DNA of 64,000 nucleotides, taken from positions 248,001 through 312,000 of IMG/VR virus record IMGVR_UViG_3300020172_001601. One strand, 5' to 3'. The notes under the pieces are model-generated. The model did no database searches. It was not told the origin of the DNA and was given only the letters and a program-made list of their open reading frames with translations. Of the stretch, positions 4,004 to 59,914 are shown piece after piece (the stretch's first letter is position 1; every line of letters starts with the position of its first letter). The translations under genes were made by a program, and so were the position numbers.

Positions 4004-4426
4004 GTGGACGACCCACACCTATTGCCATCCAGACAACGACGAATTGTTTTCTTTTTCCTTGTGTCGTTTTTTGCCATTAAACATGGACTGCATATTGCCG
4101 TCCATGTATTCCAAATAAATGCCATCTTTGGTGTCTTAATTGGAATAGCAATGGCAGCGATCATGATATACACCTTCAAAAGCATTTTCGATAGAGCAGA
4201 CAGATCAGATCAACAAGCTGCATTTCTCGATGAACGCCTAGATGAAAGAAGACAACGCCTAGATGAAAGACTAAGGCGACTGCGTGATGAAATGAGTGAA
4301 GAACTCAGAAAACTAGAAGAACTCAATGCACGCAGACTTCAAGAAGAACAAATCGAAGAAGAACAAAAAATAAGCCCTTGGTATGTAGGATTGAATGATG
4401 ATCGCTCGCATCCTAAAGACCTCTGA
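4004..4426 (+). CDS. Membrane protein (2 TM plus coiled coil)
   Basis: Two hydrophobic segments, then an E/R-rich coil. Confidence 0.6.
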   Translation: MDDPHLLPSRQRRIVFFFLVSFFAIKHGLHIAVHVFQINAIFGVLIGIAMAAIMIYTFKSIFDRADRSDQQAAFLDERLDERRQRLDERLRRLRDEMSEELRKLEELNARRLQEEQIEEEQKISPWYVGLNDDRSHPKDL

Positions 4427-5138
4427 CCCTTACCTCAAGTTAATGGTCATATACAGCACCATCATCTATTTGCTCGAAATATCAACCGGGCAAAGAGATC
4501 ATGAGTTCTTCGTATGGTCACAGCGAATCATCGGAGTGGTATTCACCATCGAATACATCTTTCGATGGCTCGATGACATTAACGACAACAAAGGCTGGCA
4601 CTATCCACACTCGCCACTAGGCATCATTGATCTTATATCAATCATCCCATTCTGGGCGCAGTTCTTCGTGCCACCACAATATCTGCACCTTGTTCGCACT
4701 CTAAGAATATTTAGGTTGCTGAAGTTCTTCAGATACTCCCGAAGCCTCCAACTCGTTGCCCTTGGCTTCTATCGAGCAGCACCAGCACTCAAGCCACTTG
4801 TATTTTCACAAATCATTGTCGGCCTGTTCTGCACCGTGGCAGTCTTTGAAGTCGAATCTCCAGCACAACCAGAGAAATTCGGCACACTGTTCGACGCCGC
4901 TTATTTCACGATGGTTACTGTTGCTACAGTTGGATATGGTGATCTAAGTCCCATCACCCCGTTGGGAAGAATGATTGCCATGTTTACATTCGTGACGGCA
5001 TTGGCTATATTTGCAGGCATCTTGGGCGTACTCGGTTCCAGCTTCTTCAAGGTCATGGAAGAAGAAATTGATCCGACCATTGACCCTCTGGAAGAGTTCC
5101 ATAAAGAGAAAGAACGAAGATTGCTTCTGAAGAAATGA
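4395..5138 (+). CDS. 6TM voltage-gated-type potassium channel
   Basis: TVATVGYGD selectivity filter; S4-like RTLRIFRLLKFFRYSR; multiple TM helices. Confidence 0.92.
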   Translation: MMIARILKTSDPYLKLMVIYSTIIYLLEISTGQRDHEFFVWSQRIIGVVFTIEYIFRWLDDINDNKGWHYPHSPLGIIDLISIIPFWAQFFVPPQYLHLVRTLRIFRLLKFFRYSRSLQLVALGFYRAAPALKPLVFSQIIVGLFCTVAVFEVESPAQPEKFGTLFDAAYFTMVTVATVGYGDLSPITPLGRMIAMFTFVTALAIFAGILGVLGSSFFKVMEEEIDPTIDPLEEFHKEKERRLLLKK

Positions 5139-6462: not shown

Positions 6463-8476
6463 CATGGACGACACACAATACATTGACGACGCTGGAAGAT
6501 ATAGAGTCTTTGGACACAACCCGAACTATGGACGATCAGAAAACATCTATCCAACCGAAAGTGTCATAAAGGCCATGTTCGGCTGGCAAAAAGACGCTTT
6601 CGAGATGGGAAAAGATGAACGATTTTTCTTGACCCAGGCGTTCTGTGGTAGTGGGAAATCCATTCTTCAAATCAATCTGGCTATCCACGATATTGTCTCC
6701 AGTGGATATAGACAGAAGCAGTTGTTCGTAGTTCCACAGGAGCATATTCACAAAGGATTTGTGGGCGATGGACTCGACCTGTTCATGAGAGTCCAACAGG
6801 GAGGCGTAGAATACAATTGGGCCATTCAACCACATCACAATTTCTGCCACGGTATCAGCCGCATTGAAAACCTCAAGAAGTGGTTACTCACGCCCCCTGA
6901 AAAGCTCGCCAAGGGATTCACCGGACAAGTTATTGGTGGACTAAATGCCGTTTGCTCTCATGCTGCACTGGCTCAAGCATGGAAGGAAATCAAGGCAGAA
7001 TACGGCAATGAAGGTCTAAACAAGATCATTCGCAATCTGACTCTAAGGGTCGATGAAGCACACCATATCAGTCTTGTATTCATGGAGGGCGAAGACCTCA
7101 CTTATGATGAATGGAAGGCCATTAAAAGTGAAATTACCGCTCTCGGCGACATCTGTACCTATATCGTGAATAGCCGTGTCCGGTCGTGCAAACTCCATCT
7201 CACAACTGCAACCATGTATCGGGGCGATTCTCGCATTGTTCTATCACTGGAGGTTCGAGCCAAATTTAAGCCATACTACTTGGATTGGATTAAGCATTTT
7301 GAATCTCTGAACATCAGAGAGTTTCTTCTTCAATATGAATTCTATGAGGAAAATCCCATTGACCTCATGGTGGCACGCATTCTTGCTGAACCCAATGAAA
7401 AACACTTCGTTGTTGTTCCAAGGTCTGGCAGCAAGTGGAGAAGTGAAGGCAACGAACATGAAGCTATATTTGACAAGCTCAATGGTAGTGGACTTCGGGT
7501 TCTTGATCTCGTCACCAAGACGACGCAAAAAAAGAACAAGAAACTATTGCTCGATGAACCTAAGTCTTTCAACCCTGATACGCCATCGAATTTCGATGTG
7601 GTCGTTGTCTGTAATTTAGGTCGAGAAGGAACAGATTGGTGTCCCTGTTCACGACTTCACAATTCATCTTGTGAGGCGTCTATCACCCTCGCAGTCCAAA
7701 CTGTTGGTAGGCCGTTTCGTCGCTATCAAGGCAAAGAAACAGTCAACATCTATCACTATGTCAAGAAGTTCGTGATGCCGAAGAAAGGCATCACCCTCAA
7801 AGAACTCCTTGGAGATCGAACCACTGCCATCCTCTACTGTATGCAAATAGAGGATTTGACGAATCCAATACTCATTATTGACGATTCGTTTGAACTGCCT
7901 GACCAAAATCCCAATCCGAAAGATACAGAAAACACAGAAGGCATAGAGCCAACTACAGCCCTAGTTCCTTTTCAGAATTACTTTGGGGATCAATACGAGA
8001 ATGTCATTCGAGCCGCATTACAAGGATATGAAAAACTGACTCAAGAGTTTGAAGATCGGCCCAAGTCCAAAGACGTTTATAACTTAATGGGCCAAATCTG
8101 TGATGAATTTGGAATCGACAAAGATCATGAATCTCGTGATAATATCCAATGGGCGCTTACAAGCCGTTTCATACGAATGGCATCACCACAAGCAAAACTT
8201 GATGGCGTCGATGTTGAATTCCTCCGACAAGCTGGCTTCAATGAAATTGACGTGAAGTATGAACTTGACCGATCCATTTACTTCAAGAACTGCTCCAAAG
8301 AAATCTGGCTCACTATCAGAACCATCATACATGGAGAGTGGCAAGAAAAGTTCGATCAAGTCAAAGCGATTGGATTGGAAAACATTATCAAACTACAAAC
8401 TCATCCTTTGTTTTGGTTCGTGAAGCATCAGTTGTATATTCATGGAAATAAACGACAGATTCATGGAAAGCAGTAA
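6437..8476 (+). CDS. Superfamily 2 helicase/ATPase (restriction Res-like)
   Basis: Walker A AFCGSGKS, DEAHH, TAT, GREGTD, QTVGRPFR motifs. Confidence 0.8.
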   Translation: MLSTRKKHNMDDTQYIDDAGRYRVFGHNPNYGRSENIYPTESVIKAMFGWQKDAFEMGKDERFFLTQAFCGSGKSILQINLAIHDIVSSGYRQKQLFVVPQEHIHKGFVGDGLDLFMRVQQGGVEYNWAIQPHHNFCHGISRIENLKKWLLTPPEKLAKGFTGQVIGGLNAVCSHAALAQAWKEIKAEYGNEGLNKIIRNLTLRVDEAHHISLVFMEGEDLTYDEWKAIKSEITALGDICTYIVNSRVRSCKLHLTTATMYRGDSRIVLSLEVRAKFKPYYLDWIKHFESLNIREFLLQYEFYEENPIDLMVARILAEPNEKHFVVVPRSGSKWRSEGNEHEAIFDKLNGSGLRVLDLVTKTTQKKNKKLLLDEPKSFNPDTPSNFDVVVVCNLGREGTDWCPCSRLHNSSCEASITLAVQTVGRPFRRYQGKETVNIYHYVKKFVMPKKGITLKELLGDRTTAILYCMQIEDLTNPILIIDDSFELPDQNPNPKDTENTEGIEPTTALVPFQNYFGDQYENVIRAALQGYEKLTQEFEDRPKSKDVYNLMGQICDEFGIDKDHESRDNIQWALTSRFIRMASPQAKLDGVDVEFLRQAGFNEIDVKYELDRSIYFKNCSKEIWLTIRTIIHGEWQEKFDQVKAIGLENIIKLQTHPLFWFVKHQLYIHGNKRQIHGKQ

Positions 8477-27331: not shown

Positions 27332-27355
27332 GGGGATCGCTTCCTCTTGTGTGGC

Positions 27356-27502
27356 ACGGCGGTACTTTAATGGCAGAAGGCGGCTCCAAGCAAGGTTCGA
27401 GTCCTTCTTAGGCTGGAGTTCTGGAGAGTTAGCTACTCTTTGGACCTCCCCCTTTGCATGGAGTACGGGGCGGCAGTGCGGGTTCGACTCCCGCTCGCTG
27501 TG
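27356..27502 (+). ncRNA. tRNA-like RNA with expanded anticodon domain
   Basis: Acceptor ACGGCGG/TCGCTGT, D-arm CTTT-AATGGCA-GAAG, T-arm GCGGG-TTCGACT-CCCGC; ~95-nt structured middle region. Confidence 0.7.
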
Positions 27503-27561
27503 TTTTTAGGTCTGGTGTACCCTAGTGGGTGTTACGAAACTTTCCTTTTGGAGAACGAACT

Positions 27562-38146: not shown

Positions 38147-38512
38147 ATGGCCGACTTGAAAGAAAAGATTGCTGAGTTTGTGAAGGCCGCTGACGAAGTG
38201 TCTGCCGCTTATTGGGAGCGACAGAAATTCACCTTCGCCAAGCCGACGCAACACCGTGCCGACTTCATCAGCGACAAATGGGTGCGTGTCGTGTCTCTGG
38301 ACGTGCCGCATGAAGGCCCGCCAGTCGTGTCGTCGGTCTATGCCTTCATCGCCCTGCAAGACGGCCACACGAAGACGCTGGGAGCAATCAAGGCGGGCGA
38401 CATTCACAAGCCTGCCGGGTTCAAGGCCCCTGCCAAGCACGCACGGGGCAACGTCTTCGAGGATGACTTCCGCAAGGCTATCCAGCCGAACGGCATCGTT
38501 TACTTGAAATAA
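38147..38512 (+). CDS. Conserved phage hypothetical protein (GDI.KPA..KAPAK.ARGN family)
   Basis: Recognisable motif. Confidence 0.75.
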   Translation: MADLKEKIAEFVKAADEVSAAYWERQKFTFAKPTQHRADFISDKWVRVVSLDVPHEGPPVVSSVYAFIALQDGHTKTLGAIKAGDIHKPAGFKAPAKHARGNVFEDDFRKAIQPNGIVYLK

Positions 38513-38644
38513 TACAACGCAGACTAGGCCAGTCTGCGGGGGAGCCAACGAGCGGCTATGCCAAGCAGGAAACTCCCCTGAAATCACAGGTCCAGTGTAC
38601 CCTGGTGGGTGTGAATAACACCCACCACTTCTAAGGAATGCGAG

Positions 38645-38872
38645 TTGACTTACCAAGAATTGAAAGCAAAGGTCAGTGCAGCACTTGGCGACGTTGGATT
38701 TTCCATCGAAGCGACGGACGACGGCCAGTTGGTCATTTATACCGACTTGAAAGAAGTCGAAGATCAGGACGAACTGGAGAACTACGAGCCGACGAATGAA
38801 CCCTTGGAATCATTGGACGACTTTCTGAGAGAAGAGTTGGGCGACAAAGACGCTTCCCTGTTTCTCAAGTAG
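38645..38872 (+). CDS. Small acidic protein
   Basis: AAGGA RBS, TTG start; stop is the motif TAG. Confidence 0.65.
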   Translation: MTYQELKAKVSAALGDVGFSIEATDDGQLVIYTDLKEVEDQDELENYEPTNEPLESLDDFLREELGDKDASLFLK

Positions 38873-38926
38873 GTCCAGTGTACCCTAGTGGGTGTAACGA
38901 ACAACCTCAACACGGAGAACTCTGCG

Positions 38927-39157
38927 ATGGCTATTACGCTGACCCCTTCCTATGGTCGTGACTACAAGAACGGCAAAGAAGTCCAAGAAGCCTGGGACGC
39001 TGGCAAGGACTTCACGATCAACTCCATCGGCCACCCGGACGATGGGCGGCAGATCAACAAGCAGGACGCCGAACGTGAGGGCGGCACCTTCAACATCCGG
39101 TACAAAAAACTGACCCAGATCAAGGTCATCAAGGTCAAGAAGGTCGCTGCGGCTTAG
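38927..39157 (+). CDS. Conserved phage hypothetical protein (PxYGRDYK...W..GKDF)
   Basis: GGAG RBS; stop is the motif TAG. Confidence 0.75.
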   Translation: MAITLTPSYGRDYKNGKEVQEAWDAGKDFTINSIGHPDDGRQINKQDAEREGGTFNIRYKKLTQIKVIKVKKVAAA

Positions 39158-39178
39158 GTCCAGTGTACCTTACACAGT

Positions 39179-39435
39179 GTAACGCCTCCCAAACATCGGC
39201 CTTGGGCAAGCCAATCAATCAGAATAAAGGAACCCCTTCCCATGAATGTCTGAAGTCCGCTAACTCCCCGGCGTAGTCATCCACGTTAGAGCGGGGCGGG
39301 ACTGCAAAGCGATGGCCGCACGTCAGCAATGGGCAGCATTGTGCTGGCTGACGTGTGAATGAAGTGCCTCCCAAACATTGGCCTTGGGCAAGCCGAAAGC
39401 AAATGCGTAGGGCAGGACCAACCTGCCCTTTTTTT
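39179..39435 (+). ncRNA. Candidate ncRNA bracketed by two 29-nt direct repeats
   Basis: gcctcccaaacatYggccttgggcaagcc at 39184 and 39366; terminator at 39410-39435. Confidence 0.6.
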
Positions 39436-39490
39436 GTTTTTGTTTGTGTAGGTCTATTGTACCCTAGAGGGTGTAACAAGCGAACAACAT

Positions 39491-39628
39491 GGCGGCGTAG
39501 CTCAACTGGCTAGAGCAACCATCATTATCGTAGCGATTGATCGGGGGTCCACGGTCAATGCGGCCAACGTGTGTACAGCGTTGGTTTGAGAGGATGGGAA
39601 GACGGGGGTTCGATGCCCTCCGCTGTCT
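39491..39628 (+). ncRNA. tRNA-like RNA with ~70-nt insert replacing the anticodon loop
   Basis: GGCGGCG/CGCTGTC acceptor, GCTC-AACTGGCTA-GAGC D-arm, CCATC/GATGG stem, GGGGG-TTCGATG-CCCTC T-arm. Confidence 0.75.
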
Positions 39629-39743
39629 GCTTACACTGTAGGGCATTTGCCCGAACAACGAGGCGTCAGAACACGCCTACAACCCCGAAAGGGGAGAGAG
39701 TGTAAGGTAGCCGTAGTGTACCCTAGTGGGCAGGAGAACAACA

Positions 39744-39902
39744 ATGCGAAAAACTGAAGGGGCAACCAAAGCCCACGCCTCTGTCGGGTATCACAAACAC
39801 CTTCGACCATTCGGCAAGCGACTGGCGAACAAAGCCACTCGCAAGAATGGCAAGCGTAGCACCAGTGTACCCTATGGGGCAGGAGACAAACATGGAAATT
39901 GA
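39744..39902 (+). CDS. Small basic protein reading through the motif (STSVP)
   Basis: AGGAG RBS. Confidence 0.55.
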   Translation: MRKTEGATKAHASVGYHKHLRPFGKRLANKATRKNGKRSTSVPYGAGDKHGN

Positions 39903-40263
39903 AGACGTGCGAAATACCCGATCCATGAGAATGGACCCGGAAAGCCCTGCGGAATACGACGAGATGGACGCCATCACCGCTGGCCCCAATGGTATGAAAT
40001 TGATGCCAGTGTTCAGCGGTGAGATGTTTCAACAGTCCGTTGCCTATCCCGTCATCGTGGAAGCATGGGACAAGAAGAACAGCGGACGCCACAAACGCCG
40101 ATGGGAAGCGACATTCACCCAAGCCGAACGGAACAAGATCAGCCGGTATTATGGCCGGTTTTACCGCTGGTATCTGGTCAGCGGCACGCCCAAACGTGTG
40201 TCACTGCAATTGAACACCTTGACCCTCCTGCAAAGGGCAGTGAACTTCTTCGCTGAATGTTAG
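39892..40263 (+). CDS. Hypothetical cassette protein
   Basis: AGGAG RBS; stop is the motif TAG. Confidence 0.75.
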   Translation: MEIEDVRNTRSMRMDPESPAEYDEMDAITAGPNGMKLMPVFSGEMFQQSVAYPVIVEAWDKKNSGRHKRRWEATFTQAERNKISRYYGRFYRWYLVSGTPKRVSLQLNTLTLLQRAVNFFAEC

Positions 40264-40284
40264 GGCTAGTGTACCCTAGAGGGC

Positions 40285-40578
40285 ATGATGAAAGACGCAT
40301 ACGGAAACGATCAAGTATATCTGGTCCAGCCCACAACTCTGGACTATGAGATCAGCTATGGTGGCGATGGTGTCAAAACATGCCAAGAGGGACGCTATCG
40401 ACACTATTTCACTGCCAGTGCTGGCGGTTTGTCGGGTAGCATTAGAATTCAATTGAACCGAGTCAGCGCCGAACGGTTTGCTGCCTATAACGGCCTGCGG
40501 TTGATAACCGACGTTGAACGTGAAGAAATTCAAGAAAGGTGGAGCGTCAGAGTGCCGGATTGGTCCAGTGTACCCTAG
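40285..40578 (+). CDS. Hypothetical protein (predicted leaderless)
   Basis: ATG exactly 7 nt after TACCCT; ends SSVP inside the next motif. Confidence 0.7.
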   Translation: MMKDAYGNDQVYLVQPTTLDYEISYGGDGVKTCQEGRYRHYFTASAGGLSGSIRIQLNRVSAERFAAYNGLRLITDVEREEIQERWSVRVPDWSSVP

Positions 40579-52775: not shown

Positions 52776-53241
52776 AATCCCAGGGCGGGACGGGATGTTT
52801 ATCGGCCCACAGGCCCAGCTTATGGCTTTTGGCGTATTCTTGTGCCTCGGCCATTTCCGGTGAATGAGAATAATCCGTATAGTGCCATGCCCAGCCTTCC
52901 TCGATCATTTCCTTGTTGATGTACCTGCCATTCAAATAGACCTTGCCGATAACTCGACCATATCGGTCTTTTTTGGTCCATTCCACTTTGACGTATTTGC
53001 CGAATATTTTCTCGCTGAGTGCTTCTTTGGCTTTGGTTCCGAATGGCTGTTTCTTTTCGGGACAGTCGATTTCGGCCAAGCGAACCTTCATTTGAGTTTT
53101 GTCAGGCTGCAATACTGTGATGGTATCGCCATCGGATATGCCTACAACATTCCCTGGGTCGGAAATAGAAAGACATATCCAAATCACTGGAATGAACGAA
53201 AGTATGGCAAGAACATAAACCGTCTTATACAGTTTGCTCAT
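52762..53241 (-). CDS. Thermonuclease (SNase family)
   Basis: DGDTI, VRLAEIDCPE, QPFG, DRYGR, GLW. Confidence 0.92.
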   Translation of the reverse strand: MSKLYKTVYVLAILSFIPVIWICLSISDPGNVVGISDGDTITVLQPDKTQMKVRLAEIDCPEKKQPFGTKAKEALSEKIFGKYVKVEWTKKDRYGRVIGKVYLNGRYINKEMIEEGWAWHYTDYSHSPEMAEAQEYAKSHKLGLWADKHPVPPWDFRKK

Positions 53242-54341
53242 TAGTTGATCCTAACGAAATCACGGCGTCCACATTGAACGACTTGCCCTGATTGCAGCAA
53301 CAATTGTTCATCAAAGACTTTGGTGCCGTCTACTTTGACGGCTCCATCTTTAAGTCTTTGTCGGGCAGCGGTTTTCGAGATATTGCAACAGGCAACTACG
53401 GCACTCAATAGCGAAGAGGCCGGTAGTGTAGGAATATCTGGAGGCAGTTCTTTGTTCTGCACGGTCTTGAGGAAGTGTTCCTGAGCCGCCTGAGCGACTT
53501 GTAGTGTGTGTAGTTGATTCACGATCTCGACGGCAAGAATCTTCTTCTTGTCCATCGGATGAATATCCTCGACTGTGAAATCTACAAATAAAGGGAACCA
53601 TTCCTGCATGACGGCATCAGGAATAGACATGACCTTCCCAAATACGTCATTAGGGTCTTCATCGAAGAAGATGCAGTTGTCCAGGCTCTTGCTCATCTTT
53701 CTGCCATCTGTGCCATTGATGATGGGCATCATGATGCAAGACTGAGGTTTCTGTCCGTTGGCTTCTTGTAGATGCCGGGCGACTTGAAAGTTAAACAATT
53801 GATCCTGCCCGCCGATTTCGATTTCAGATCGGAGGGCAACACTATCCCAGCCTTGGCAGATAGGGACCAAGAGTTCGTGCATACCAATAGATTGCTGATT
53901 GGCAATACGATCTTGGAAGGCGTTACGGCTGGTCATGTGCGAGAGTGTGAACTTTGCCACCTGTTTCATAAAGGTGGGAAGTGTCATCTGATTATGCAGC
54001 CAACCATTTTTACATATGGTCCATTTTCCTGGGGATTCTGGCCCGAAGTTATCGTTGCCAAGTATTTGCTTGATTTGCACGAAGATGGATTCGGCGTTGG
54101 CTTCAACATCATCTTCAGCCAATATTGGCCGGGTTGTATCACGACCAGAAGGGTCGCCGAGTTGGGCTGTGAAAGTTCCCAATACGATTGTGAGTTGATG
54201 CCCTTCTTGCATCATCTTTTTGGCGAGACGTAGCGGCACAAGATGCCCCAAATGCAAACGGGGGAAGGTCGGGTCGATCCCAAACTTCACCCGTTTGCAA
54301 GGGGGCAAATCGGCATTTTCAGGAAATACTTGAAAAGCCAT
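53241..54341 (-). CDS. tyrS: Tyrosyl-tRNA synthetase
   Basis: GIDPT, HLGH, GGQDQ, KMSKS and a C-terminal S4-like domain. Confidence 0.93.
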   Translation of the reverse strand: MAFQVFPENADLPPCKRVKFGIDPTFPRLHLGHLVPLRLAKKMMQEGHQLTIVLGTFTAQLGDPSGRDTTRPILAEDDVEANAESIFVQIKQILGNDNFGPESPGKWTICKNGWLHNQMTLPTFMKQVAKFTLSHMTSRNAFQDRIANQQSIGMHELLVPICQGWDSVALRSEIEIGGQDQLFNFQVARHLQEANGQKPQSCIMMPIINGTDGRKMSKSLDNCIFFDEDPNDVFGKVMSIPDAVMQEWFPLFVDFTVEDIHPMDKKKILAVEIVNQLHTLQVAQAAQEHFLKTVQNKELPPDIPTLPASSLLSAVVACCNISKTAARQRLKDGAVKVDGTKVFDEQLLLQSGQVVQCGRRDFVRIN

Positions 54342-58297: not shown

Positions 58298-59914
58298 TTA
58301 TTCGTCGTCTTCTGGTGATGGAGAACCTGAAGGAGCGGCGGGTTTGCCGCCACCACTCTTCAGCTTGTTCAGACTGTCCTTCCAACGCTGAGTTGAAAGA
58401 TTTCGTTTGACGGAATCGAACTCGCTGCCTTGTGGCGCACGTCCCAGGAACTTCGTATATTCTGGGTTGACGGTTCTTTTGCCATCAGCACCCTGCGAAT
58501 ATGGTGTCAAATCTTTGTCGTCATGAGCTAAGAAGTTATCGACTTCTGGACCGTGAGCTTTGGCCATCTGCATCCATTCACGAATCTTGCTCTTGGTCAA
58601 ACCTGTGTGTGCAGATTTCATGTCATAGAAGTCTTTAGGGTCGAACTTGTTCTTGGCTCCCCACTGATACAGCTTAACCAAATAAGCAATATCTCCAGAC
58701 TCTTGCTTGGACCAACCGCCACCAGTCAACATTTTCTTGACATCTTCTGGATCGTTATTGCGAAGAACCCAGGCCGGAGCCAACCAACGGTCGCCTCGGA
58801 AGTCTTCTGGCATTTGTTCTGGGTCAAAGTCAACACCTGGGAAAACACTATTGAGCAAACCAGTATTCTGGAATGCCTTCATGTATTTGCGAGGATCGCT
58901 ATCTGGATGTTCCAGACCGCTAAGGAATTCCTTACGAACTGTGTCCTTATCGACGCCATTCATGTCTTTGTGACGGGAGATAGATGCTTGATACTTTTCA
59001 GGAATCTTGTCGGAATTGCCATATCGTGTGACCATCTTCATATATCGCAGAGCGGTAGATGGGTCTTCTGACATGCGGGATTCCAGGTCGTCGCCAACAG
59101 CCTTAACTTCACCATTCTTCAAATGGTGAGCGCCACCGTGCGGGTCGATCAAGTCGCTATTGTCACCGTCCGCAGTCGTCAGCGGGATGTATAGTGAGTT
59201 AATCGTAAAGTCACGATTGGCTGAATCTTCTTCCACGGATGCGGCTGATTCACCCTTGTCAGGCTGAACTCGGCGGCTCTTAGAAGACTTAGAAAGGGTG
59301 GCAATAGAGAATTGTTCGCCGTTGATTTCGGCGGTTACTTCCAATTCTTTGCCTTGTTTGTCCCAGCGAGAAGCGTAGAAAATCTTGTTCTTAGTGCCTG
59401 GAGATGGAAGTTTTGCATATCTCTCGTCGCTGGCGTAGTCTCCTTCACGGGGCTTCGTTTCGGAAAACTGCGTTTCTAGCTGAGTCAGAATCATACGCAT
59501 TTCACTTGGCGTAGCATCTGTAACCAGATCGTAGTTACGAGGGGTCTTGCCCTTCAAATGGTCACGAACGGCACCACCTGTGAGGTACAATACCTTCTTT
59601 TTGAGGTTTGGCTCAACTTCACCCTTGGACTTATCAATCGTGGTGTAGCCTACTCCCACGTTCTGGGAGTCGGCAAATGCCTTGATAAGCACTCTAAGGT
59701 TAGGGTGCGTGGTTTTATTGATGGTAAACGGTGCGAATTCCTTGGAGCCTTCCTTCTTCTGCAATTTAATGCGTGAAGTGATGTTTCCGGCTCCTGGTTG
59801 ACCGCTACTACCGCTACTACCGCTGCCACCATTTCCACCGCTGGCCTCGCCTTCACTTGGCTTGGCTCCGGTTTCTTCTCTTAACTGAAAGTAACTTGCG
59901 AATAACTTTTTCAT
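58298..59914 (-). CDS. tRNA nucleotidyltransferase / poly(A) polymerase family protein
   Basis: GGAVRDHL, (N)YDLVTDA, RDFTINSL, EDP..ALR; first catalytic Asp appears to be Asn. Confidence 0.85.
   Translation of the reverse strand: MKKLFASYFQLREETGAKPSEGEASGGNGGSGSSGSSGQPGAGNITSRIKLQKKEGSKEFAPFTINKTTHPNLRVLIKAFADSQNVGVGYTTIDKSKGEVEPNLKKKVLYLTGGAVRDHLKGKTPRNYDLVTDATPSEMRMILTQLETQFSETKPREGDYASDERYAKLPSPGTKNKIFYASRWDKQGKELEVTAEINGEQFSIATLSKSSKSRRVQPDKGESAASVEEDSANRDFTINSLYIPLTTADGDNSDLIDPHGGAHHLKNGEVKAVGDDLESRMSEDPSTALRYMKMVTRYGNSDKIPEKYQASISRHKDMNGVDKDTVRKEFLSGLEHPDSDPRKYMKAFQNTGLLNSVFPGVDFDPEQMPEDFRGDRWLAPAWVLRNNDPEDVKKMLTGGGWSKQESGDIAYLVKLYQWGAKNKFDPKDFYDMKSAHTGLTKSKIREWMQMAKAHGPEVDNFLAHDDKDLTPYSQGADGKRTVNPEYTKFLGRAPQGSEFDSVKRNLSTQRWKDSLNKLKSGGGKPAAPSGSPSPEDDE

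Follow-up and report, generated by a model that had tools for sequence, protein, structure and literature searches.

The tRNA-shaped element at 39491-39628 is probably not a tRNA with an intron, but the front half of a two-domain phage non-coding RNA of about 218 nt (39491-39708), which is absent from the RNA family library searched and recurs in uncultured phages from lakes and oceans. We give this reading a probability of roughly 0.55; the existence of the RNA and its biological role are inferred from sequence alone. The element lies in a window of 64,000 nt, bases 248001-312000 of a 340-kb IMG/VR phage record (IMGVR_UViG_3300020172_001601) that CheckV estimates to be 69% complete. The original prediction described it as a tRNA-like RNA ("RNA 2") with a two-hairpin insert of about 70 nt in place of the anticodon loop and its own promoter, and every sequence feature that it listed is indeed present in the DNA. 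The unit can be divided as follows:

39458-39471 (+), phage promoter-like motif TGTACCCTAGAGGG that precedes the RNA
39472-39490 (+), predicted 5' leader ending in ACAU, with U at -1 before G+1
39491-39627 (+), tRNA-like domain: acceptor 39491-39497/39621-39627, D arm 39500-39516, anticodon-type stem 39519-39523/39593-39597, variable region 39598-39603, T arm 39604-39620
39524-39592 (+), 69-nt anticodon-arm extension: internal loop AUUA/GAG, 3-bp helix UCG (39528-39530)/UGA (39587-39589), hairpin 1 (39533-39561), hairpin 2 (39562-39586)
39572-39577 (+), self-complementary hexamer UGUACA in the loop of hairpin 2
39628 (+), discriminator U, invariant in all family members and followed by invariant GCU
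39629-39708 (+), conserved 3' four-way-junction domain: P1 39630-39637/39699-39706, J1/2 GUAG, P2 39641-39652, J2/3 GAACAAC, P3 39661-39678 inside the invariant 24-mer 39657-39680, J3/4 AA, P4 39683-39694, J4/1 AGAG 39695-39698

The body reads as a complete cloverleaf, with a 7-bp acceptor stem (GGCGGCG/CGCTGTC, two G-U pairs), U8, a D arm GCTC-AACTGGCTA-GAGC containing A14, G18 G19 and A21, a CCATC/GATGG stem, a 6-nt variable region, a T arm GGGGG-TTCGATG-CCCTC with T54 T55 C56 and A58, and a discriminator U without an encoded CCA. With permissive filters, the Rfam tRNA model (RF00005) matches 39491-39628 end to end (model positions 1-71) at 32.5 bits, above the gathering score of 29 (E 1.3e-4 for the 1.2-kb search), with 71 nt inserted at the anticodon loop. 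ARAGORN with default settings and Rfam at its default filters both miss it, whereas ARAGORN with the intron option calls a tRNA-Leu(gag) with a 62-nt intron. Since 69 nt lie between the two strands of the stem, the element has no contiguous 7-nt anticodon loop on a 5-bp stem. The minimum-free-energy fold reproduces the cloverleaf together with the two predicted hairpins, attgatcg/cggtcaat and ccaacg/cgttgg. However, the fold energy of the insert alone is not exceptional (z -1.4), and the hairpins thus rest mainly on conservation and on the shared architecture of relatives.

The motif TGTACCCTAnnGGG lies at 39458-39471, 20 nt before the first G. It is one of 61 matches in the window, all but one (a two-mismatch match) on the + strand between 17343 and 45018, against 2.6 expected by chance. 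Nearly every copy sits in front of a small gene, which fits a phage promoter, although this function is an inference. The U(-1)/G(+1) step at the end of the leader is the usual context for RNase P. Two metatranscriptome runs aligned to 38500-40500 cover only the upstream RNA at 39199-39378 and not RNA 2, and a run search with the 241-nt unit listed no RNA run.

DNA patterns and the downstream 123-aa protein (43 homologues) led to syntenic loci in other contigs (designated L followed by a number). L009 and L095/L096 carry an identical RNA and L010/L092 a diverged one, and the promoter-like motif is conserved in front of the RNA in L009, L010 and L092. Between the two lineages several changes are compensatory: the anticodon-type stem changes C-G to U-A, acceptor pair 3:70 changes C-G to G-C, and the 3-bp helix between the start of the insert (UCG) and the nucleotides next to the 3' strand of the stem (UGA) changes to UUG/UAA. 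The insert is at least as conserved as the body, and the whole intergenic block is conserved, including about 80 nt after the RNA. The possibility of a dead tRNA gene disrupted by an insertion, to which the failure of standard detectors and the unremarkable fold energy of the insert might point, is very unlikely given the dedicated promoter-like motif, the intact tertiary-interaction nucleotides, these compensatory changes and the recurrence of the same design in dozens of phages, coupled to a covarying 3' domain. More distant homologues of the downstream protein (L091, L093, L094, L098-L100) lack the promoter motif, and ARAGORN with the intron option finds no RNA 2-like gene in their flanks; a covariance model of the 3' domain (R1, see below) found no such domain in the five of these to which it was applied (L099 was not included). 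An insert-specific pattern, meant to reveal a mobile module, found only the two known relatives, and a pattern combining promoter and T-loop gave one unrelated chance hit (L090).

In a more distant relative (L102/L103, 66% protein identity) the same promoter motif is followed at the same place by a different 135-nt tRNA-like sequence, with another acceptor stem, a 7-bp anticodon-type stem, an unrelated 66-nt insert and no credible anticodon loop, and yet by the same trailer as in the window. This trailer (39628-39708), which the original prediction left outside its finding, folds into a four-way junction with z -5.1 (0 of 200 shuffles as stable), in the order U, G, P1 (8 bp), GUAG, P2, GAACAAC, P3 (GAGGCGUCAGAACACGCCUAC), AA, P4, AGAG, P1' and GU. 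Its 24-nt core occurs exactly in 50 metagenome and 5 viral contigs, most of them marine, some freshwater and a few from soil. The marine loci that were scanned carry tRNAs, and two of them (L117, L122) carry manA RNA, a motif known from marine T4-like phages; the proteins neighbouring one marine unit all fall in PHROGs families of unknown function. In about 47 of these loci (34 distinct units) the domain directly follows a tRNA-like gene of 111-149 nt with an extended anticodon arm carrying two hairpins, always through the same junction of acceptor 3' strand, U, then GCU; in an alignment of the family the columns T1 G2 C3 T4 are invariant. In L114 the preceding gene is tRNA-Lys-like with a normal anticodon arm.

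Model R1, built from the four freshwater copies, matches 28 loci and aligns them; it scores 112 bits in the window, where the full set of junction strands and the P3 hairpin is present, and 41-109 bits in 21 other loci. On this alignment 96.9% of cells are paired, against 43-58% when partners are slid, 15 of 20 pairs show changes on both sides, and no shuffle reaches the observed values. Covariation is strong in P1, P2 and P4, whereas P3 never varies, partly by construction, because the loci were collected with an exact 24-mer. The domain is far more conserved than the tRNA-like part. It occurs once in the 340-kb record and is absent from the T4 tRNA region (model R1), from 50,697 phage records (blastn with the 3-kb region and with a marine unit) and, as the exact 21-mer of the P3 core, from 185,579 representative bacterial and archaeal genomes. 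No Rfam 15 family matches it: at E up to 10 there is no ribozyme or riboswitch hit, including the hammerhead, twister, twister-sister, pistol, hatchet, HDV-like and hairpin classes, in 38800-40000 or in marine unit L122 (6200-6540), nor any match to the domain at gathering score in 12 loci. Readings of the domain as a tag-like ORF, an HDV-like fold or a second tRNA were rejected on inspection of the sequences, the nested helices being covarying. ARAGORN finds no tmRNA, and the reading frame through the domain is not conserved between the freshwater and marine forms, as judged by reading the sequences. The P3 module also appears in other multi-helix arrangements, some beside tRNA arrays, but a reading of these outlier loci as circular permutations of the junction is not established.

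This pattern, with junction strands (UGCU, GUAG, GAACAAC, AA, AGAG) and P3 invariant across phages of very different base composition while the helices covary, is typical of ribozyme or riboswitch cores. The domain could therefore be a cis-acting catalytic or sensing RNA, that is, a new self-cleaving ribozyme or a ligand- or protein-responsive element, which would set the 3' end of the upstream tRNA-like RNA at the U/GCU junction or control read-through into the downstream genes, the tRNA-like part being its substrate rather than its handle. The occurrence of P3 in other arrangements and the lack of a terminator before the next promoter are compatible with this view. We nevertheless consider it unlikely, as no known ribozyme or riboswitch model matches, the idea rests on conservation rather than on any cleavage data, and the invariance of P3 is partly imposed by the search.

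Is RNA 2 a spliced tRNA-Leu with anticodon GAG, its 62-nt intron lying between the 5' strand of the anticodon stem and position 32 and being removed by an unknown phage or host activity to give a working decoder? Several observations would agree with it. Within the RNA 2 lineage, the 7-mer next to the 3' strand of the stem looks like a good anticodon loop (UUGAGAG; UUAAGAA in the L010/L092 homologue), in which U33 and A37 are kept and the anticodon change (GAG to AAG) is Leu-synonymous, and a compensatory change keeps the insert paired with U33-G34-A35, as introns do in pre-tRNAs. The record has 52 standard tRNAs but none for Leu, it encodes one RNA ligase (PF09414), and a CCA-adding-type nucleotidyltransferase lies in the window at 58298-59914. 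Moreover, introns have been reported in phage tRNAs (PMC6784885). However, the body is class I with U73, whereas bacterial tRNA-Leu is class II with A73. The modelled intron position, 31/32, is not canonical (37/38), and the fold shows a symmetric 4x3 internal loop and a 3-bp helix rather than a bulge-helix-bulge, with its two 3-nt bulges separated by 4 bp. At 62-69 nt the insert is too short for a group I intron, which needs about 200 nt or more for its P1-P9 core, and no intron family matches at E up to 10. Neither a splicing endonuclease (PF01974) nor RtcB (PF01139) was found in the record, although this absence weighs little since the record is only about 69% complete and the host is unknown. 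No insert-free allele was found in IMG/VR with a pattern requiring the same D arm and T loop 20-32 nt apart.

The isotype, kept as Leu within the RNA 2 lineage, is unstable across the wider family and at the syntenic L103 locus. The intron option of ARAGORN calls Ser, Ser, Arg and Phe for the near-identical L122, L128, L133 and L137, and Leu versus Pyl for L110 versus L157, while none of the family is called without that option. The "GAG" of RNA 2 aligns with a purine-rich junction strand (UAGAG, UUAAG, UUGAG) that closes the three-way junction in relatives. Finally, splicing does not explain the conserved 3' domain. Comparative evidence thus speaks against it, and we regard this rival as unlikely.

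In the marine members the anticodon-type stem is lengthened (for example, 8 bp in L122) and opens into two hairpins whose stems covary and whose loops, AUACUAGUUA and CUGAUCA, are conserved. RNA 2 has the same layout of stem, three-way junction and two hairpins, but its insert has no convincing sequence homology with theirs, so that the relationship of the tRNA-like halves is architectural and their shared ancestry is not proven. The insert hairpin loops carry 6-nt palindromes that change while staying palindromic: ACUAGU, ACAUGU, UCUAGA, CCUAGG, GCUAGC and UGAUCA in relatives, GAUAUC in L103 and UGUACA in RNA 2. Across 30 distinct inserts, 67 palindromic hexamers were observed against 32.5 +/- 5.4 in dinucleotide shuffles, a count that is only indicative because the sequences are related. 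The pattern suggests loop-loop self-pairing, which is an inference.

Based on the above data, we propose that RNA 2 is the 5' tRNA-like module of a two-domain RNA that would be transcribed from its own phage promoter inside a cluster of small, separately promoted genes. What the analysis shows is a module that keeps every element of the tRNA L-shape but lacks a contiguous anticodon loop, a covarying four-way junction fused to its 3' end, a promoter-like motif upstream, no terminator before the next promoter, and the recurrence of this pairing in marine T4-like phages and freshwater huge phages; transcription, processing, CCA addition, dimerisation, protein binding and function are inferred. 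In this model, the tRNA-like module is recognised by the tRNA machinery of the host, RNase P would cut at U-1/G+1 and an RNase Z/BN-type enzyme after U73, releasing a stable, non-decoding tRNA mimic of about 137 nt, which could receive CCA from the phage or host nucleotidyltransferase, and the 80-nt junction RNA. Processing would be needed to define the 3' end, given the lack of a terminator. The tRNA shape would thus serve as a processing and stability handle and as a docking surface for tRNA-binding proteins, and the UGUACA loop would let two copies pair loop to loop. Because the same 3' domain follows an unrelated tRNA-like body in L103 and even a tRNA-Lys-like gene in L114, it looks like the constant functional part, with the invariant P3 hairpin as the likely effector surface for a partner common to very different hosts or phages. 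A bolder and only tentative possibility is that the unit is a new class of phage RNA, in which the invariant junction is a catalytic or universal-factor-binding core delivered and processed by a tRNA mimic, whose palindromic loops would make it self-associate into dimers or higher assemblies, as recently reported for other phage-associated large RNAs; this would be an RNA-only device used by both marine and freshwater phages.

The interpretation given in the original prediction is therefore only partly supported. A tRNA-scaffolded RNA of roughly 140 nt rather than a standard tRNA, membership in a family, a promoter-like motif of its own, the lack of an encoded CCA and the presence of a CCA-adding-type enzyme in the window all hold. 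In contrast, the family is not defined by RNA 2 together with RNA 1, the other tRNA-like RNA with which it had been grouped, but by the 80-nt four-way-junction domain immediately 3' of the discriminator (39628-39708). RNA 1 exists at 27355-27503 with a comparable design, but it has no 3' domain and is not the same family. The proposed involvement of RNA-repair enzymes stays conjectural; the record has one RNA ligase but no RtcB and no splicing endonuclease.

Phage tRNA genes with unexplained inserts have been noted since 2019, and T4 RNAs C and D have had no known function for fifty years. Our analysis indicates that at least one such "tRNA with insert" is half of a larger conserved RNA, whose second half is nearly invariant from AT-rich marine phages to a GC-rich freshwater phage of more than 340 kb, matches no Rfam family and was not described in the papers searched. 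This gives a concrete, testable object for asking what tRNA mimics do for phages, how they are processed and what universal partner the invariant hairpin recognises. It also warns that intron-mode tRNA calls in phage genomes can be artefacts.

YrlA-type Y RNAs, the Ro60/Rsr partners that mimic tRNA and are known in phages (PMC4201824), are among the closest analogues. They have D and T arms and all tertiary contacts, their anticodon arm is replaced by another functional stem, and they are recognised by RNase P, the CCA-adding enzyme, TruB and DusA. The genome studied here encodes a full-length Ro60 orthologue (PF25045, 59 bits; PDB 2nvo, E 7e-18), and 60 nt downstream of it lies another tRNA-like RNA with a 51-nt anticodon-arm insert, a pair that is kept in L165. 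RNA 2 might thus use its extended anticodon arm to bind Ro60 and tether it to another factor, as YrlA does in bacteria and mycobacteriophages, but this is doubtful. By the criteria of PMC4201824, YrlA is encoded within about 4 kb of rsr on the same strand, is circularly permuted (V, T, closed acceptor, D), ending in the Ro-binding stem, and has a GNCGAAN0-1G motif. RNA 2 (genome position 287491) is 181 kb from rsr (104332-106074), it has the normal tRNA strand order with an open acceptor stem, and a regular-expression search of 39472-39712 finds no such motif. Its insert does not align with the rsr-adjacent RNA, Ro60 relatives in other phages are followed by ordinary tRNAs, and no TROVE protein was found in the three family-bearing viral contigs searched, which are fragments. 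YrlA has no 3' four-way-junction partner.

The "enigmatic" introns of Lak megaphage tRNAs (Devoto et al. 2019, PMC6784885) resemble RNA 2 in appearance, being inserts of tens of nucleotides in the anticodon loop of huge-phage tRNA genes, highly conserved, without a known splicing mechanism and called only in intron mode. They differ in behaviour, since for Lak alleles with and without the insert exist and the tRNA type is stable, whereas here no insert-free allele was found, the called isotypes are unstable across relatives and a conserved 3' domain is attached. A tRNA or tRNA-like fold directly next to a second functional RNA, such that RNase P or RNase Z cleavage would define both products, also occurs in MALAT1/mascRNA, MHV68 tRNA-miRNA units and bacterial 3' external transcribed spacer RNAs; those systems are eukaryotic, herpesviral or chromosomal, and none has this four-way junction or an anticodon-arm extension.

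The other nearest analogues are the stable RNAs C and D of bacteriophage T4 (rnaC, species 1, 139 nt; rnaD, species 2, 119 nt), whose function is still unknown (PMC3014915, PMC9697503). Like the present unit, they are phage-encoded, non-coding and linked to tRNA genes, they are two adjacent RNAs of sizes similar to the two domains described here, and rnaC carries a T arm (CCGGG-TTCGAAT-CCCGG) and an acceptor-like stem. There is, however, no sequence or model similarity between them, and rnaC has no clear D arm. The T4 RNAs are reported as late, whereas this unit sits in a cluster of small promoter-led genes. RNA 2 can thus be placed among phage tRNA-mimic RNAs.

Just upstream of the two-domain RNA that contains RNA 2 lies a separate non-coding unit, and further features of interest are distributed over the window as follows:

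39164-39436: non-coding unit of about 260 nt
27355-27503: RNA 1, a tRNA-like sequence
17343-45018: cluster of promoter-like motifs, all but one on the + strand
39745-39903: small, very basic ORF
53241-54341 (-): class I Trp/Tyr-type aminoacyl-tRNA synthetase
58298-59914 (-): CCA-adding/poly(A) polymerase-family nucleotidyltransferase
4395-5138 (+): ion-transport channel protein

The upstream unit has its own variant of the promoter-like motif, a long hairpin, a 27-nt direct repeat (CCTCCCAAACATYGGCCTTGGGCAAGCC at 39187 and 39369), and an intrinsic terminator at 39409-39429. It is conserved in the syntenic relatives L010/L092/L103 and is the only part of the region seen in RNA libraries (contigs 39209-39358 and 39199-39378), while a search against Rfam gave no match. 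On the other side, directly after the two-domain RNA, lies the small basic ORF (MRKTEGATKAHASVGYHKHLRPFGKRLANKATRK...), which is conserved in L103 but absent in L010/L092.

The motif TGTACCCTAnnGGG, with up to two mismatches allowed, is matched 61 times between 17343 and 45018, against 2.6 matches expected by chance. Nearly every one of these precedes a small ORF with a Shine-Dalgarno sequence a few bases after the motif, so that the region looks like a long cluster of individually promoted small genes.

RNA 1 is a tRNA-like sequence with a 65-nt insert that itself contains a T-arm-like hairpin (AAGGTTCGAGTCCTT); it is co-transcribed after a small ORF and ends in a T run. It has no 3' four-way-junction domain, and is therefore not of the same family as RNA 2. 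The invariant hairpin module of that domain, AACGAGGCGUCAGAACACGCCUAC, also occurs in other multi-helix RNAs that lack the standard tRNA-like partner (loci L106, L113, L120, L121/L147, L136, and L154). In L121 it lies just upstream of a tRNA array, and in L113 it lies among tRNAs.

Insert-bearing tRNA genes are common in viral metagenomes. A loose D-arm/T-loop pattern returned at least 80 viral contigs from IMG/VR (L011-L088), most of which carry tRNA genes with 26-66-nt anticodon-loop inserts from many unrelated families, and several of these inserts (in L012, L026, and L053) contain a T-arm-like hairpin. In addition, a distant huge-phage relative (L093, a 223-kb contig) has at 7380-7557 a 178-nt tRNA-like gene with an 86-nt insert, about 2.4 kb upstream of the homologue of the protein encoded downstream of RNA 2; a Thg1-family gene lies nearby.

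The synthetase, the nucleotidyltransferase, and the channel protein encoded in the window were identified at 183, 74, and 86 bits, respectively. At 70-107 kb and 182 kb of the phage's own genome, there are 52 standard tRNA genes plus two amber-suppressor-type tRNAs (anticodon CTA), whereas no standard tRNA for Leu, Ser, Tyr, Cys, or Phe was found in the 340 kb examined. TAG recoding is possible. Several further tRNA-like genes have 17-51-nt anticodon-loop inserts (70325, 101019).

Lastly, two loci outside the window deserve mention:

own genome 104332-106256 (637-2561 of locus L159): Ro60/Rsr gene and the tRNA-like RNA that follows it
own genome 79999-80122: second tRNA-like gene

The phage encodes a full-length Ro60/Rsr orthologue (Ro60 vWA domain, 59 bits; D. 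radiodurans Rsr structure 2nvo, E 7e-18), followed 60 nt later by a tRNA-like RNA with a 51-nt anticodon-arm insert. A paralogous insert sits in the second tRNA-like gene at 79999. This is a likely Y-RNA pair, with normal, not permuted, tRNA strand order.
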